From Bugula neritina (Eukaryota > Animalia > Bryozoa), in NCBI GenBank assembly GCA_964035545.1, contig OZ037766.1:15552722-15616721 (forward strand): DNA of 64,000 bases, given 5' to 3'. The position numbers and the translations under genes were made by a program. Below, in pieces: positions 2,207-34,232 of the stretch. Positions within the stretch are counted from its first letter, which is position 1. Each line of letters begins with the position of its first letter. The notes beneath the pieces were generated by a model, which was not told where the DNA came from, did no database searches, and saw nothing but the letters and a program-made list of their open reading frames with translations.

Positions 2207-2563
2207 TCAGATACCACTTTCATTCCAAAATGTCTTACTATTCTGGATCGAAGGGTGAGTTAATTATGTTTTTGGTACGATAACTAGACTGCATCAGTCA
2301 GCTACACTAGCTAGCTGGAGATTCGATAATGATAAACAGTGGTGGGAATACACGTCGACTTTGATTTTAAATAATCTGTCATAGCGAGTGTGTTCTCCAT
2401 CAACTATTCATTAGCCTGAATCTCACGAGTGTAACTGAACAGAGTACCGGTCAGGCTGTACACGCCGACGGTGTCTCAGTGTATAATCTTTAACACTGCT
2501 ACTCTTTCAGATCACACTCGAGTGACCACCTCCCGGTCACGGGACCAGCCAACCTCTCTGTCT

Positions 2564-3277
2564 ATGGAAGAAGAGCCTGTAATGGAGAATGGCATACCAG
2601 TAGTACTCCGCCGACGACACCGTTGGGTGTCACCCACGACAGAGAGGAGAATTGAAGAAGCCTGGGGACCCAGTGGACCACACCGAACCTGCCAGGTCTG
2701 CTTTGAGGAGTGCCCGTCACACCGCTCCTTGCGTTTACATGTAGATGCCCATTTCCTACTCCACTTCTGTCCCTGCGGGTTCCACGACGTCTACCCGTAT
2801 CCCGTGACAGTACATAAGCTAAGCTGCTTCGCCGGAGAGAACCACACTGTTGATGAAGACAGTTTCCCCCTATACCTGGATGCCATCAAGCCAGTCATCA
2901 GGAAGGCTATTACCCTGGCCGCACTAACGTCCGGGTTTCACGTACTGTTACTATCTGCCCGCCATAAGTCCCCTATGGTTCAGGGCCCACCTCCTACCCC
3001 CGTCAACCCTAGCAACACCCCAGAAGTAGAAGAAACAACCATATCCCGTATAACGGAGACCCCCATAACCCCACCAAGACCTAGCCAGCTGGCTAACGTA
3101 GAAGAGCGGCTTCTAAGACTGCAAGCCGAGTTCACACAACTTGCCCCTGACTTGCTGGATACGACGACAGGTCTATACCAGTTGAAGGACTCAGTGGGAC
3201 GACTGAAGAGGCGGCTACGGGCCCGACAGGCTCGACACAGAGCACGGTCGCTACAAGAAGCAGAGTCCAACCAATGA
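2564..3277 (+). CDS. Extra 3' ORF of the retrotransposon: C2H2 + C2HC zinc fingers, Pro/Thr linker, C-terminal coiled coil (237 aa from the ATG)
   Basis: CQVC-x12-HVDAH followed by CPC-x12-HKLSC; heptad-like LANVEERLLRLQAEF...LKDSVGRLKRRL. Lies between ORF1 and the PPT. Candidate splice acceptor CTCTTTCAG ends at 2510. Confidence 0.7.
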   Translation: MEEEPVMENGIPVVLRRRHRWVSPTTERRIEEAWGPSGPHRTCQVCFEECPSHRSLRLHVDAHFLLHFCPCGFHDVYPYPVTVHKLSCFAGENHTVDEDSFPLYLDAIKPVIRKAITLAALTSGFHVLLLSARHKSPMVQGPPPTPVNPSNTPEVEETTISRITETPITPPRPSQLANVEERLLRLQAEFTQLAPDLLDTTTGLYQLKDSVGRLKRRLRARQARHRARSLQEAESNQ

Positions 3278-5690: not shown

Positions 5691-7347
5691 GCTCTTAGAA
5701 TATATCACGACTTTACTGTAGCACAAAAACGGTGTGCTTGGAAACCATGTGAATTTCAACTTCGATATATTCTCTAAGCTAATGTGAGATGGAATGTTAC
5801 ATTATTCTGCAGCATGCGTAAATGGGTGAAATTGAGCTATAGGTGAAAACTAAAAACTATTTAACTGTTACTTTTAAAAATAACGGCTTTGTTAGAGGCA
5901 TTTACGTGTTTAGAACATGTAGTTGAATATTTAAACTAAGTTTTGCATGTGAGGTGGCTCTTAGTAAGTTTGTCAGAATTAAGATTGCTTCAAGTTTGTG
6001 ACTTTAAAGTATTTCGATTATAAACATGAAGATAAAGGAGTATAGAATAGAATGAATGACTTGAATTGAAGTTAATGCAAAATTATGTTCATTAAGCAGT
6101 CACCATAAATTGTGCTCTAATTCTTATCTATTAGCTTCTTGGTAAACTCCTCAGACTTTAATGTATGCTGTTAGTGAAGTTTATAAGACAGAGCCCTGTA
6201 ATACTTTCTAATTTAATTCGTGTACCTGTATACATATGTGCACTATTTTAGCAGTTATTATATAATTTATTTTAATTTTTTATAAAAGTTTTAGCAATAA
6301 CATGCAAAAGAAGTTCAACTATAACTAAAATTTGAAATAAAATTTGGACAAAAATACAATAGCTTATATCAATAACATTAGTTCATGTAACACTCGAAGT
6401 TTGTTTAAATAAAATTTTTAATGCTTTCTGGCATGTCATCAATTTTTTTAACTTCATAAATGAAAGTTTTTATAAATCAAATTCTTTGAAAAGAAATGTT
6501 TAAAAATTCAAAAACTCAAATATTCTAGCAGATTACTGTTAGCATAATTCAGTTTTGCATTTTAAAAACTTTGTTTTGTCTCTGTGCTTTAAAGAGGGTT
6601 TCTAATATCTAAAGAGTTCAAGATATAAGTATATTTATATCATGTGCATTTTTTTCTATATCTTTATATATAATATATATTATAATTCATTGTTCTAACT
6701 TTAATTTCTAACCTTTATAGCGTAAAGGTCTCATATACTTAAAATCATGAAGTGTGATTTTTATGCAAATCAATAAAGAATAGGCCAGATGGTAAATATC
6801 TTTTTACAAAATTATTTTTGTGGTCTTCAAACTAAAATTAGTTATTTAGTTGTGAAACACATGCTAAGAGATGACCTAAATAACGTATGCCTATTACTAT
6901 ATTAATAAATTACTTGGACTAATTATACTTCTATCATATTTTGCCCAACATTTACATGCATGTCTTTAATGTTATTTCTAAAACATTTTCCTATCCTAAA
7001 CTCCATTTTTTGTCAAAATAAGTTAGTTTGGTGAGCTTTTTATATTCATGACAGCCCTTGTAAATTATTGCATTCGCTATGCACTAAATACTTTGCGAAT
7101 AATATAGTCTCTGTTTTGCAAGAACAACATTTTCACTTTGGCTATTTTTTGTTGAGAAATGTTGTAAATCAGGCATATGATTGTTACCATAGACTTATTA
7201 TGTTTAAGTCACAATATTTTTTGTACTAAGGTATTACATAATTTTATATTCCTATATGTTGACTGTTCTTTGATTTTGTTACAGAGAATAGAGTTCTTCT
7301 ATTTCAAGCATATATATAGTTAATTACTTGTATAATTATATGTCTAG

Positions 7348-19760: not shown

Positions 19761-21723
19761 ATGATTGACTTTGGCAACTTGAGTGACCCAGTCAACATGA
19801 ATACTTATTATGTAAATGTGACATCTTCCAACACTAATATAGATCAGCCTTCACCAGGTAACTATGACTTCCATGTATATTAATATCAAACGTCTTATTA
19901 TTTTACAATGTCAATGAATCTGCTCCTCTATAATGGAATATATAATAATATGAGTTTTAATTAGTCTATTAATAGATTTTGCTACTGTAGTCTATAATAT
20001 ACATTATGCAAATGCCTTCACATGTGGAATGCATTGCTTGTTTTGTAACTAATTATATACTAGTTCCGTTTTGCAAGAAGCCTTATATATTTTGCAATTG
20101 TCTTTAGCTTATTAACTAAACCTAAAATCAGTATTAATATGAATAATAGTTACAAAATTATCTTTGCCATATTTTAAATAATTTTTGTCAACTTTTATAT
20201 TTCATTTTTCAGATTTATATGCTCCAGAGAGAATAATTTCTGCATTATTCAAAAGCGCATTGACTCTAGTTTGTATCATTGGAAATGGTTTGGTAATCGC
20301 AGCTGTAACAAGTCTAAAGCCGTTACGGACCCCTCCAAATGTATTGATTGTAAGTCTGGCTGTTTCGGATCTACTCGTTGGAATTATAGTAATGCCATTG
20401 TCTATTATGTACGTGTACCTGAGGAGATGGCCGCTTGGGTTTCGGGCATGCTCGGCTTGGGCTACCTTTGACGTAATGCTTTGTACGGCGTCTATTCTTA
20501 ATCTGATGATGCTGACAATTGATAGATATATGATCATAACTAGGCCTATGGTTTATGAGAAGTATAGAACTATTAGGATGCTACTGCTATGGATTTTTCT
20601 TACCTGGTTGTTAAGCATAATGATTAGTGTAACGCCTTTAATCATTGGCTGGGATGTGGAATTTAATGGAAAACTATGTGAAATTAACCACCAAATTGGC
20701 TACCAGTTATACGCTACGTTTGGGGCTTTCTATCTTCCGTTATTTGTTATGTTTGTGTTATACGGAAAAATATATAGCATCTCACGACATATGGCTAAGG
20801 AAGACAAAAAGATGCATCCAACATATTTAGAATCATTATATAGTGTAGATACAGAAGTCACCATGAATAGCCTTACAACTTTTCAAATGCTAACAACGAA
20901 AAGAACTTTTCAATTATCTTCTACAATTGATACACAAATGAGTATGCTTGAAAATGAAGATACTAATAAGGCAGTTGAAGAACCTGCTAGCGAAGAAAAA
21001 CAGGACTATCTTTCATGTAACCAGACAAATTCAAATGCAAATAAGCTTGATCATATCAAGAAACATACTGGAAATGATGGCAATGGTGTATGCTTTTATA
21101 TAGATCATAATAGTACAGCAGACATGGAAGATATGAACAAAAATATTTGCTATAAAGGGAATGAAGATAGCACTGGTAAAGGTACAGATAATAGTCATGA
21201 AGCTTGTTTGGATGATGAAACAAACAGTTTTATGCCTAATGCTAATGGTGCTAGTCATCAAGATGCATTACAGTTAAAATCGAATCCTATAAACATGCTT
21301 CAGTCTAGAAATGCTATACCAGCGGAACTGAGCTCTTGTATGTATCCTGCTAAGCATAAAAACTCAGATATATGTGAACCAATCAGACATTCAGCCAAAA
21401 GAAAAAAATCAACAGTAAGTGGAGGAAATGTGATGAAGACTCTGGGTGTCGTGATGGGCACGTTCACAGTGTGCTGGCTGCCATTTTTTATTCTGGCTGT
21501 TGTACGATCTAGCTGCCAAGATAATTGCCCTGTGCCAGAAACTGTCACCATTATTCTGACTTGGTTAGGTTATGTTAACTCATGTTTAAATCCAATTATT
21601 TATGTGAGCTTCAACAAGGACTTCAGAACACCATTCAAAGAAATACTATGCTGTCGATGTCGCACTATAAAGCATGCACTTCGCCAAAACATGTACCAAC
21701 AACGCTATGGCAGGAAAAGTTGA
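19761..21723 (+). CDS. HTR7: Serotonin receptor, 5-HT7-like class A GPCR (about 535 aa)
   Basis: Exons 19761-19857 (N-terminus with NLS and NVT glycosylation sequons, phase 1) and 20213-21723. Shows GN, LAVSD, D3.32 (FDVMLCTASILNL), DRY, YQLYATFGAFYLPL, CWLPFF, WLGYVNSCLNPIIY and a tail DFRTPFKEIL..RC...YQQRYG typical of invertebrate 5-HT7. Confidence 0.9.
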
Positions 21724-23416: not shown

Positions 23417-26400
23417 TCAATGCTGATTGGTCTGGTACACAATAGGTATTAGGTCAGTGTCATTGGTCGTTCCATCAGAATTAAGAAATATTGGAGTAAG
23501 ACCAGCAAGGACCTTCAACCCATCAGCGGTGTAGTCATTAGACAGACTGTCACTAGGCAAGGTCTGACTCGAATCCATCATCATACTCGAATGTCTGTTC
23601 AGAGAATCTAAGTTGACTGCAGCAGATGCAGTGTTTGTATCTTGAGGCAGTAAGTATGTAGTGACTGTATTGTCAGGCTGAACGGGAAGCCTTATAGAAT
23701 CACCAGTTAAATAATACCTTGGCAAAGTACCGTCACCTTGCGGAGTCATTGGATCACCAGAGATGACATAACGACTGCTGCTGTCAACTGTTCCATGCTG
23801 CCATGAAACTTGAGGCTTTTGTGAAGAGCTAAGATTTGATGATGATGTTGCAATATTATTGAGGAAGCTGTTAATGCTATTGCGCTGACCTTGGGCAAGA
23901 CTTTGGACTGGTGTAAAACCAACAGGGTCATTGTGACCGCTAGTTCTAGTGTTCAACAGGGGAGTGATGTGTACTGTAGTGCTGGAAGAGCCAAGGTCAG
24001 GGGCATTAGCCAGAGGTAAGGAAGAAGAGCTGCCCTCCATCAGGTTAGTCTCTACTAACAACTGTTGAATGGAACGAGTGAACTCAGACGCAGTTAGCTC
24101 AGAAAGCTGCTCGGTCTTTGAGTTTCTACCTCTTGATGACTTCACTGTTCTCTGTCCATCAGGATGTATCTTCACATGATGTCTTTTAAGATGATCTGAC
24201 CGAGCAAACTTCATGAAACATATATTACACTCAAAGTTCTTCTCTTTGGTATGAGTCAACAAATGGCGATCACGATCTTTCAATGCAAAAAACCTCTTTT
24301 CACACGTAGTACATTTGTATTTCTTCTCCATAATGCCCCGACTTTTATAAGATCCAGCGTGAACTTTAATGTGTTGAGTGACGGTAACCGAGCTATCGAA
24401 TAGTTTATGACAGAGAGAACATTCTAGAGAACCCTCTTCTTCCACTTTATGTAAGGCTGTGTGCACATTGTATGATAACTTACTCGTATATTGCTTCTTG
24501 CAGTGATTGTAAGTGCATTTAAATAACTGCCTGCTGCTATCATGCACAACCAAATGGGCATTGAGATTGTCTTTCCGAACAAATGCCTACCAACACAAAA
24601 ATATTCATTTACATTTCCACCAGCTACCAACAGCATATACTACACCTACTACCATCTTCAAAGCGTGTAGACATGGTAGCTTACATTTTCAGCTTTACCT
24701 TTTCTTAACAGAAGTTGGTAAACTAGCTTGTTTAACTAAAATGGGTGCAGATATATTGTAACTTAAAGGAAAAACAGCTCATTAGCTTACAGAGCGCGCT
24801 GGTTGAACATCTTACCTTGCCACAATGCGTGCATGTGAAATCCCGCGATCCATGAGTGAGAAGATGTCTATCAAGTTTAAATTTAGTGTTGAAATTCTTA
24901 AAGCATTCTGTAATATGGCACTTGTAAGGATATTCCCCTGTATGAACATGCATGTGTATATCCAGCCTAAAAAAACCAAGTAGACATTGACATTGATATA
25001 AGAGTATTTCGAAGAAAAATGGTTTGTCATCTTTTTCAACTACTAAATAAGCTAAATCACAGGTGTTCTGGCAAAACATATAATGCATAACCAGAGCAAA
25101 TTAGTATTTAAGGGTCAGCCAAGTTAAAGCAACAACTAAAGGATGCTAGATTGCTGCCGTGCTACTCACCTTCGTCTGCTATTGAATGAGCTGTCACATT
25201 CCTGACACTTGACCTGCTCAGCCGTATCCTTCTGGTACCTTCTGACAGGCATCTTGCGGGATGCTGATTTCTTCCGGTTCTTATCTCCAGCCGTTATTTT
25301 AGTTTTAGGTAAAGATCCAAGTTTTTGTGGTTTGCCTTTCCGTTTATTCCGAGTTCGACCTCCTTTCATACCAGGGCCTACAAACCAGTTCTTCAAATTG
25401 AAGTATTTTATTTATGTACATATAATTAAAACAATAAATTATAAGATTATTGGATGCAATGAATGCAAAGAAGTACCTATACACCTAGTATATCGCACAA
25501 GTTTGTATTACATTACATACATTTAGCTGGTTGACCTAGTTGATTCCCAGATATATTGAAATCTCGCATAAGCAACATCAACATACCAGGAATAATCTGG
25601 TCATTAGCTGAACAATAAAATCTCACCTGTTTTAAGTGCTTCATTTGGACAGTTATGGGCATCAAACGATTCAAAATCAGAAAACACCAAATCACACGTA
25701 TCACAGGGGAAGCCATCCTTGAAGATTACCTTTTTTTCAAGCGGAGGTAAAGCAGCACCTGAAAATCATCATAAGTGATAAGAGCGAACCAGAAAAACGT
25801 AAGAAAATAAAATAGTGAACAGGGTAGCAAGTGTTAAAATAGAGAAAAAAAAAACTGCAGAAGTATTGCGAAGCTAAAAGAGCAGAGAAAGATATATCAA
25901 AGGAAAAGTTATGATTTTGAAGCAGAACCAAAAAAGATGTTCATAGAAAAATGGCAAAATTAGTGAGAGAGCGACCTAATACCTTACTCAAACTAATTTT
26001 ATTTCAACAATATTATTTAAGCAGATGCACACACATAAATCTTATTTTTAAACACTAAACATTGTGAGCAATAAAGTAGAGTAAAAGCTATAATACAATA
26101 TATACTATGCAAAAAAGTACTTTGGTAAGTGCTTACTGGATTGCTTAAGAGTTTTCACACCCATTAAAAGAGCATAACTCTCAGATAAGCCAACTCTCAA
26201 TTCTTCACCAACGTCAATGTTCTGAAAAACAATAGTAAATCAAATGTTAAGAAAAACACAATTCACATAGAATGCAGCACACATTTAAAATGAGACTGTC
26301 TTTGAGATGACTAATCTCTTGTTGAATGTTAACTTTATTATCCCCTCTTTGTGAGATAGTTGGAAGCTGTCCGGATATGAAATAAAATTCAAATTTGCTC

Positions 26401-33081: not shown

Positions 33082-33086
<5 letters not shown>

Positions 33087-33167
<81 letters not shown>
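33087..33167. repeat. (TA)n microsatellite
   Basis: Seen directly. Confidence 0.95.
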
Positions 33168-33171
<4 letters not shown>

Positions 33172-33174
33172 CAA

Positions 33175-33221
33175 TCTGTGGACAGCAGCTGTTTTAGGGT
33201 TTGTCCCCTCATCAGCACAAA
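33175..33221 (-). ncRNA. Type I hammerhead ribozyme copy with core mutation (GAAA to AAAA)
   Basis: Minus strand UUUGUG CUGAUGA GGGG ACAAA CCCU AAA ACAGC U GCUGU C CACAGA. Stems are retained but G12 is replaced by A. Confidence 0.8.
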
Positions 33222-33446
33222 ACAGAGTACCATGGCCCACACCTTCGCAATAGTAGAAACTTATGTTTCTACTAAAGCATATTTAAAAGGTGTGTAAATT
33301 CAAGCCAGAGAGCTCAAGTGACTCTAGGGGTCACCTAGGAGTCATGAGCCTTGCAAAATGCTAGCAGCTTGAGTTTGTGACCATGGTGAGAGTGCTCAGT
33401 CACTGAATGTCATTGCTGAGCATTAAGTGAAAGCATAATACCTCAA

Positions 33447-33493
33447 TCTGTGGACAGCAGCTGTTTCGGAGTTTGTCCCCTCATCAGCACAGA
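33447..33493 (-). ncRNA. Type I hammerhead ribozyme, intact core
   Basis: Minus strand UCUGUG CUGAUGA GGGG ACAAA CUCC GAA ACAGC U GCUGU C CACAGA. Stems I, II and III all pair. Predicted GUC cleavage between 33453 and 33452. Confidence 0.9.
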
Positions 33494-33530
33494 ACAGAGT
33501 ACCATGGCCCACACCTTCGCAATAGTAGTT

Positions 33531-33726
<196 letters not shown>

Positions 33727-34043
33727 TTTAGTTGATGACATGGATAGCCTAAACTGATCTGCTGATGTTGGATGAACAACGGCGTACTTTGGCAAATAAA
33801 TCTGTTGAAATTGTTAATCAACAAGACCAAATTTATAGCCTACAATATGCCCTTCTCAGCCAAAACAAACAGGCAATGATGTCAATTATGTAAAGATATA
33901 AAACATTGCAGGCCCAATGTTCTGCTTACAACATGATGAGTATATATGCAGTAATAAACAAGTTTATGGTTATTTCATCTCTTAGCACCGAGTGACAGAA
34001 TCTGGGACAAAATAGATTAGCTGAGTTACAATTTTGGCTTTTA

Positions 34044-34232
34044 TACACACACACACACACACGCACACACGCACACACGCACACACGCACACACGCACAC
34101 ACGCACACACGCACACACGCACACACGCACACACGCACACACGCACACACGCACACACGCACACACGCGCACACGCACACACGCACACACGCACACACGC
34201 ACACACGCACACACGCACACACGCACACACAC
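34044..34232. repeat. (GCACACAC)n/(CA)n microsatellite
   Basis: Seen directly. Confidence 0.95.

Follow-up and report, generated by a model that had tools for sequence, protein, structure and literature searches.

The window, i.e. the whole 64-kb stretch of Bugula neritina DNA that was analysed, begins with an LTR-element relic at 56-2206 and 2471-3277 (both plus strand). The relic held a 716-aa ORF with matches to an aspartyl protease and an integrase zinc-binding domain and no match to a reverse transcriptase (RT). The GC content of this region was 54%, compared with approximately 30% in the window. A rhodopsin-family GPCR (7tm_1, E = 3e-67) was encoded by a long intron-less exon at 20185-21723 (+), without a start codon at its 5' end. 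A C2H2 zinc-finger ORF was located at 23417-24553 (-). A microsatellite of the type (CACACACG)23 occupied 34048-34230, 320 bp past a TA tract. The element analysed in the following lies within TA sequence at 33169-33528 and was read on the minus strand.

Two direct repeats of 91 nt each, 33166-33256 and 33438-33528, were spaced 272 nt apart in the window. They had been reported in the initial annotation and were present with 4 mismatches, at 33195, 33196, 33198 and 33220. All four differences between the repeats fell inside the 47-nt ribozyme. Since the first 3 nt of the repeat (ATA) are common to the TA tract, the element proper was delimited as 33169-33528 (-). This insertion, assigned to the family A described below, comprised 360 nt or 1.32 units of 272 nt. 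Its 3' end on the minus strand read ...GUC/CACAGAUUGAGG at 33169, and its 5' end at 33528 was positioned mid-unit, at unit position 197. The two TA microsatellites that had been named as flanks were likewise found. On the 3' side with respect to the ribozyme strand, 33086-33168 consisted of (AT)41 = (TA)41, with a period of 2, 41.5 copies and 100% matches in Tandem Repeats Finder. The 5' side, 33529-33727, began with a filler TTT (plus strand) and continued as (TA)n with few interruptions, for which Tandem Repeats Finder gave 33531-33727. One (TA)n tract was split by the element.

The 272-nt unit between the two cleavage sites, 33181-33452 (-), had a GC content of 43.8% and was non-coding and strongly self-paired. 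Its minimum free energy (MFE) was -99.8 kcal/mol compared with -69.8 +/- 4.6 kcal/mol for 200 shuffles (z = -6.55), and 0 shuffles were as stable. As stated in the initial annotation, the unit contained no credible ORF. ORFs were at most 39 aa, and longer ones were read-through of the TA repeats. A UAUUAU box was present at 33435-33440 (-), just 3' of the fixed copying start (GAGG-UAUUAU), and may be the place where a (TA)n DNA primer aligns.

Hammerheads of type I were recognised by the motif CUGANGA at positions 3-9, GAA at positions 12-14 and a cleavage triplet NUH. The upstream hammerhead at 33447-33493 (-) had an intact core and was identified by a descriptor scan, a pairing list and a sub-threshold Rfam alignment. 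CUGAUGA was located at 33487-33481, helix II at 33480-33468, G12 at 33467 and C17 at 33453. The predicted cleavage site was 33453/33452, after GUC. The layout was that of type I, with both RNA ends in helix I and CUGAUGA, GAAA and GUC in correct order and spacing. Helix I was formed by UCUGUG/CACAGA with 6 bp plus a distal 3 bp past an internal loop. Helix II comprised GGGG/CUCC, i.e. 4 bp including one G-U pair, with the loop ACAAA and followed by GAAA. The G-U pair originated from a single C-to-U change at 33470. Besides 33447-33493, no complete hammerhead was found in the 64-kb window with the helix-aware descriptor. The downstream hammerhead at 33175-33221 (-) was detected by copy alignment and the mismatch list, not in the descriptor scan. 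It read CCCU-AAAA compared with CCCC-GAAA in the family, corresponding to C11.1U (33196) and G12A (33195). Both changes were transitions at the one CpG of the core. An additional C-to-U change was located in helix I (33220), and the GUC site was intact with C17 at 33181. G12 is essential for hammerhead catalysis. The catalytic core of 33175-33221 was broken by C11.1U and G12A, and the locus therefore does not hold two working ribozymes. Of the tandem hammerheads claimed initially, only the one at 33447-33493 retained a complete core.

The fold initially described for 33447-33493 was correct for helices I and II, the core and the GUC site. Its helix III, ACAGC/GCUGU, cannot close within one copy because the loop would have 1 nt. 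A single copy allowed a helix III of at most 3 bp with a 5-nt loop. This catalytic fold reached -8.3 kcal/mol and was not the MFE structure (-15.7 kcal/mol). When two 61-nt copies were co-folded, the MFE structure was a double hammerhead with -39.7 kcal/mol, compared with 2 x -15.7 kcal/mol for separate copies. In this prediction, the copies shared a helix III of 5+5 bp and helices I were formed between the copies. The full 356-nt transcript of the canonical 1.31-unit copy L020:1417-1772 was also predicted to form a double hammerhead, and the models suggest this fold for the family. A dimeric design has been published for most metazoan type I hammerheads (PMC4209133). In the predicted fold of the 360-nt transcript of the window copy, the double hammerhead was not formed. 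Within a double hammerhead, the site at 33181/33180 would be cut by the live upstream core, and no cut would occur at 33453/33452, the site served by the dead core. This makes the cut at 33453/33452 expected in the initial annotation doubtful. With one core dead and a transcript not predicted to fold as an active double hammerhead, the window locus should not release a 272-nt monomer.

The Rfam search proposed initially did not recover the ribozyme. Rfam hammerhead families gave 0 matches at the gathering score, and the best permissive match, RAGATH-1-hammerhead, reached 15.2 bits compared with a cut-off of 56.3 bits, alike for the window copy and the canonical copy. Other matches at permissive E-values, to miRNA and lncRNA families, were regarded as chance.

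The monomer had 757 candidate matches in the 216-Mb genome. Forty of these 757 candidates were scored and gave 80 alignments with 91-100% identity to the window copy, distributed over all large contigs. The 40-nt ribozyme core was matched 522 times in the genome with at most 3 mismatches compared with 0 times for the reversed control, so that the hammerhead motif is not a product of chance. A generic pattern, CUGAUGAG..CGAAAC..GUC, gave 391 matches and 25 in the control. Two sister families were distinguished. Family A had a 272-nt unit, a helix II ending in ...ACCCC and the tail GAGG. Family B had a 271-nt unit, a helix II ending in ...AUCCC and the tail GAGA. Family C was an older, decayed relative of both. 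The unit junctions read GAGG-UAUUAU in family A, GAGA-UAUUAC in family B and GAGG-UAUAAA in the old family C. Arrays ranged from less than 1 to 5.0 units with one hammerhead per unit, and units were 99.4% identical within arrays and 96.8% between arrays. Approximately 70% of the ribozyme copies had a canonical core. Apart from the unit itself, no terminal repeats were found, and neither were an LTR, a primer-binding site or a polypurine tract. The genome-wide picture that the initial annotation had proposed to check, hundreds of loci with short tandem arrays and (TA)n flanks, was confirmed. The covariation in the stems that it had also proposed was hardly found. Across families A, B and C, both sides had changed in only 2 of 86 predicted pairs, which is uninformative because the families are too young.

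Retrozymes are defined structurally by units of about 150-450 bp with less than 50% GC and a type I hammerhead each. With a unit of 272 nt, 43.8% GC and arrays of up to 5 units, the family belongs in this definition; the window copy comprised 1.32 units and one live core. The element in the window is supported as a genomic copy of a non-coding family of the metazoan non-LTR retrozyme type, as the initial annotation had proposed, by the 757 candidates, arrays of up to 5.0 units and the combination of one fixed and one variable end. The other genomic copies closest to the window element showed 97% identity. Its two repeats differed by 4.4%, indicating that it is older than most copies, and 33169-33528 is an old, decayed and probably inert family member. 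Two decayed family C copies were located at C1:4.23 Mb (L032:1361-1643 and 5743-6053) in a local segmental duplication, together with a duplicated TPR-repeat ORF. The lineage has therefore been resident for a long time.

For the anatomy of the insertions, 37 arrays of families A and B were oriented on the ribozyme strand and the unit was numbered from the first base after the cleavage site. The 3' end was positioned at unit position 11 or 12 in all 37 arrays (...GUC/CACAGAUUGAG(G)), next to TA-type sequence, and directly abutted plain (TA)n in 35 of them. Across the genome, 3' junctions of the form ...GAUUGAG(G) followed by (TA)n were found 335 times compared with 0 in the control. TA targeting, suggested initially from the window, was thereby extended to the family. 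The base after the copying start always opened a UAU(U/A)A box in families A, B and C. The 5' ends were variable and many family B copies held less than 1 unit. However variable, 5' starts fell on unit positions 6-16, corresponding to whole-unit lengths, in 11 of the 37 arrays (binomial P = 1.5e-7). Some 5' joins carried short extra pieces of the tail: AGG, TTGAGG or, in L008, a repeated AGG-TATATAT. Insertions ending at GUC beside A/T sequence were found 0 times genome-wide, and only 1 insertion in the genome started at the first base after the cleavage site.

TA microsatellites interrupted by GG were observed as well, for example at C3:18807306-18807417, C7:9510221-9510254 and C4:13397705-13397740. 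The sequence (TA)5-GG-(TA)5 had 24 genome matches compared with 1 for the reversed control, often in runs 12-30 nt apart. These interruptions may have been left by insertions that were aborted or truncated to an extreme degree. Short partial copies in inverted head-to-head arrangement were present beside retrozyme arrays at C5:9208046-9208191 and C7:11143813/11144149. Inverted neighbouring copies have been described for Penelope-like insertions.

A helper element was sought by domain and motif searches. RVT_1 had 2192 candidates in the genome, and the best 150 of these were all LINE- or LTR-like. The Pfam GIY-YIG search gave one locus only, with small and unrelated ORFs, probably a host gene. 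A degenerate GIY-YIG pattern, Y-[VI]-G-[EQ]-T-x-R-x4-R, was matched 88 times in the genome compared with 1 time in the control. Nearly all of the 88 matches were due to one 35-mer encoding YVGETGRRLSHR, as expected of a young repeat family. The matches frequently occurred as close inverted pairs, an arrangement also typical of Penelope insertions. Loci with this motif include C5:6,370,200, C4:21,362,932, C3:9,905,932 and a complex at C9:2,727,000-2,738,600. Seven of 73 motif loci were situated within 5 kb of 125 sampled retrozyme loci compared with 0.42 expected, one of the seven retrozyme positions having been added by hand from the monomer search. The closeness could result from a preference of both for TA tracts or repeat-rich regions. 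In the loci examined around retrozyme copies, the GIY-YIG motif was absent, and ten ORFs near copies either belonged to host genes or matched no family. Penelope-like elements have a (TA)n insertion bias (10.1101/2021.04.23.441226) and have been named as likely retrozyme helpers (PMC7229834), and their terminal repeats are related to retrozymes (10.64898/2026.07.22.740005). The helper is probably a Penelope-like element, identified here from a 12-residue motif alone. The link to a Penelope-like RT, named in the initial annotation beside other retroelement RTs, gains indirect support from the motif repeat, which was found near retrozyme sites above chance.

On contig C9, the 21-nt unit start occurred four times on one strand at a spacing of approximately 2.59 kb (2730544, 2733136, 2735720 and 2738308). 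A normal 3' junction closed the series at C9:2738562, and the GIY-YIG pattern was matched at C9:2727128(-) and 2727539(+). A tandem element of larger size, perhaps the parent or the helper, may have its ends in common with the retrozyme.

Altogether, 33169-33528 is likely an inactivated insertion of a young, non-autonomous metazoan non-LTR retrozyme with the following life cycle. Copies of more than one unit would be transcribed on the ribozyme strand. In the transcript, two hammerheads 272 nt apart would pair via an extended helix III and cut after GUC, with the fold predicted in silico and the activity presumed. The 272-nt monomer would be circularised by a host RNA ligase, as suggested by published work on other species. 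An RT and an endonuclease, probably from a resident Penelope-like element, would nick a (TA)n microsatellite, and the TA 3' end would align on the UAU(U/A)A box and presumably prime synthesis there. Copying would always begin at the same place inside the unit, which the junctions locate 11-12 nt 3' of the cleavage site. Synthesis would proceed for less than 1 to approximately 5 turns round the template, often halting at whole turns, and the product would be rejoined into the TA tract. The outcome would be the structure observed, partial tandem arrays in which one end is fixed and the other varies. One turn and a further 88 nt would yield the window copy, an ordinary product of this process, and later loss of the CpG in its downstream core would have ended monomer release.

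The pattern of the junctions suggests an origin of the copies from RNA, through target-primed reverse transcription at a (TA)n nick. The template was continuous across the ribozyme site and was therefore not a cleaved linear monomer. This candidate was rejected, with 0 insertions ending at GUC and 1 starting just after the site. On an RNA religated into a circle, the enzyme would come round to the point where it began, which accounts for the internal start as well as for the peak at whole turns. The template was unbroken and probably circular. It is tentatively suggested, with low confidence, that the family records how a Penelope-type, telomerase-related RT initiates. The TA end would be placed on the UAU box of a circular RNA and copying would start at the fixed internal position 11-12 nt past the site. 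Synthesis would stop after exact turns or roll on, and aborted starts would leave GG scars, resembling a telomerase-like templated addition to TA repeats.

The junctions themselves require only a template that was unbroken at the cleavage site. A linear multimer that had not been cut, or a read-through transcript, could also have served, and the hammerhead would then have no bearing on mobility or be used otherwise. Microhomology between TA and UAUUAU at the 5' join could alone favour whole-unit lengths, and the extra pieces at some 5' joins (TTGAGG, AGG and the AGG-TATATAT of L008) resemble template switching. However, approximately 70% of the ribozyme copies in this young family had a canonical core. 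The whole transcript of the canonical copy L020 is by prediction built to form the double hammerhead, and the monomer was unusually self-paired, like published retrozyme circles (PMC7229834). A linear multimer in place of the circle is rather unlikely. It is improbable that the copies are 5'-truncated tails, i.e. terminal repeats, of a protein-coding Penelope-like element and do not form a family of their own. Every array of more than one unit among the 37 cycled into the same 272- or 271-nt unit for up to 5 units and none entered other sequence, and neither a GIY-YIG motif nor an RT-like ORF was present in the examined loci around copies. This is set against a family A unit at C5:6.37 Mb that follows a GIY-YIG motif of the same strand at a distance of approximately 0.7 kb, and against the unit-start 21-mer recurring every ~2.59 kb at C9:2,730,544-2,738,328, where a larger element may share the ends.

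The identity of the enzyme was considered in the same way. The 2192 RVT_1 candidates included several families with long open frames among the best 150, which would make a LINE or another RT available for mobilisation. However, partial tandems, inverted neighbours, hammerheads and the (TA)n bias are published hallmarks of Penelope-like elements, and the Penelope-type GIY-YIG repeat was both present in the genome and near retrozyme sites. Mobilisation by a LINE or another RT instead of a Penelope-like element is quite improbable. Ordinary satellite DNA with the relic of a ribozyme motif, multiplied by unequal crossing-over or segmental duplication, is scarcely credible as an explanation for the hundreds of short arrays scattered over all large contigs. 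Some copies were duplicated together with their flanks, as in L013/L014, where identical 430-nt copies were 590 nt apart, and in the old pair of L032. One exact end and variable, truncated other ends in TA tracts form a pattern of retroposition, not of a satellite. The retrozyme reading, with a probably circular template and a probable Penelope-like helper, was retained.

Animal retrozymes and their link to Penelope are already published, and the element itself is not surprising. The family is young and homogeneous, and its value lies in a clean insertion anatomy. The fixed start, the absence of ends at the cleavage site, the whole-unit peak and the TA targets lead to a testable model of reverse transcription, with an unbroken, probably circular template and TA-primed internal initiation. 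An in vitro assay of Penelope retrotransposition is still lacking in the field (Craig et al. 2021, 10.1101/2021.04.23.441226), and the family offers a compact substrate for it. For genome annotation, the family accounts for many interrupted TA microsatellites that are invisible in the ORF track.

Newt satellite 2 and Schistosoma Sm-alpha are repeats of approximately 330 nt with type I hammerheads and resemble the present family, and newt and salamander ribozymes need the double-hammerhead form. To our knowledge, newt satellite 2 and Sm-alpha occur as long satellite-like arrays or SINE-like copies, with no reported (TA)n specificity. Plant LTR retrozymes (Cervera et al. 2016, PMC4918200) are likewise non-autonomous, processed by hammerheads and dependent on the RT of another element, and share the circular intermediate proposed here. 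In contrast to the present family, they carry type III hammerheads in LTRs, a primer-binding site and a polypurine tract, and they show 4-bp target duplications and Gypsy-type helpers. Hammerheads and partial tandems are also known from Penelope-like elements (Cervera & de la Pena 2014, PMC4209133; Craig et al. 2021, 10.1101/2021.04.23.441226). The present family shares with these elements a type I hammerhead whose helix III is short and palindromic and which, by prediction, works as a dimer. Partial tandems in head-to-tail order of which one end varies, inverted neighbours and a microsatellite bias that includes (TA)n are also common to both. The present family differs from them by the absence of an RT/endonuclease ORF and by a unit of 272 nt compared with approximately 3 kb. 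Unlike the 'minimal' variant of many Penelope terminal repeats, its hammerhead has a canonical helix I of 6 bp and helix II of 4 bp.

The closest likeness was to metazoan non-LTR retrozymes (Cervera & de la Pena 2020, PMC7229834; Li, Clavereau & Pollet 2026, 10.64898/2026.07.22.740005). Three features were not found stated in the cited retrozyme literature, namely a target that is strictly (TA)n, a start fixed at 11-12 nt past the site and the absence of ends at the cleavage site. Compared with the published elements, arrays were mostly very short here (less than 1 to 5 units). Metazoan retrozymes co-reside with Penelope-like elements, to which the GIY-YIG motif repeat may belong here. The present family agrees with them in its non-coding tandem units (170-400 nt in metazoan retrozymes) with less than 50% GC and a type I hammerhead each, and in being dispersed, multicopy and strongly self-paired. 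For metazoan retrozymes, copying of a circular RNA into tandem cDNA has been proposed, as it is for the family described here.
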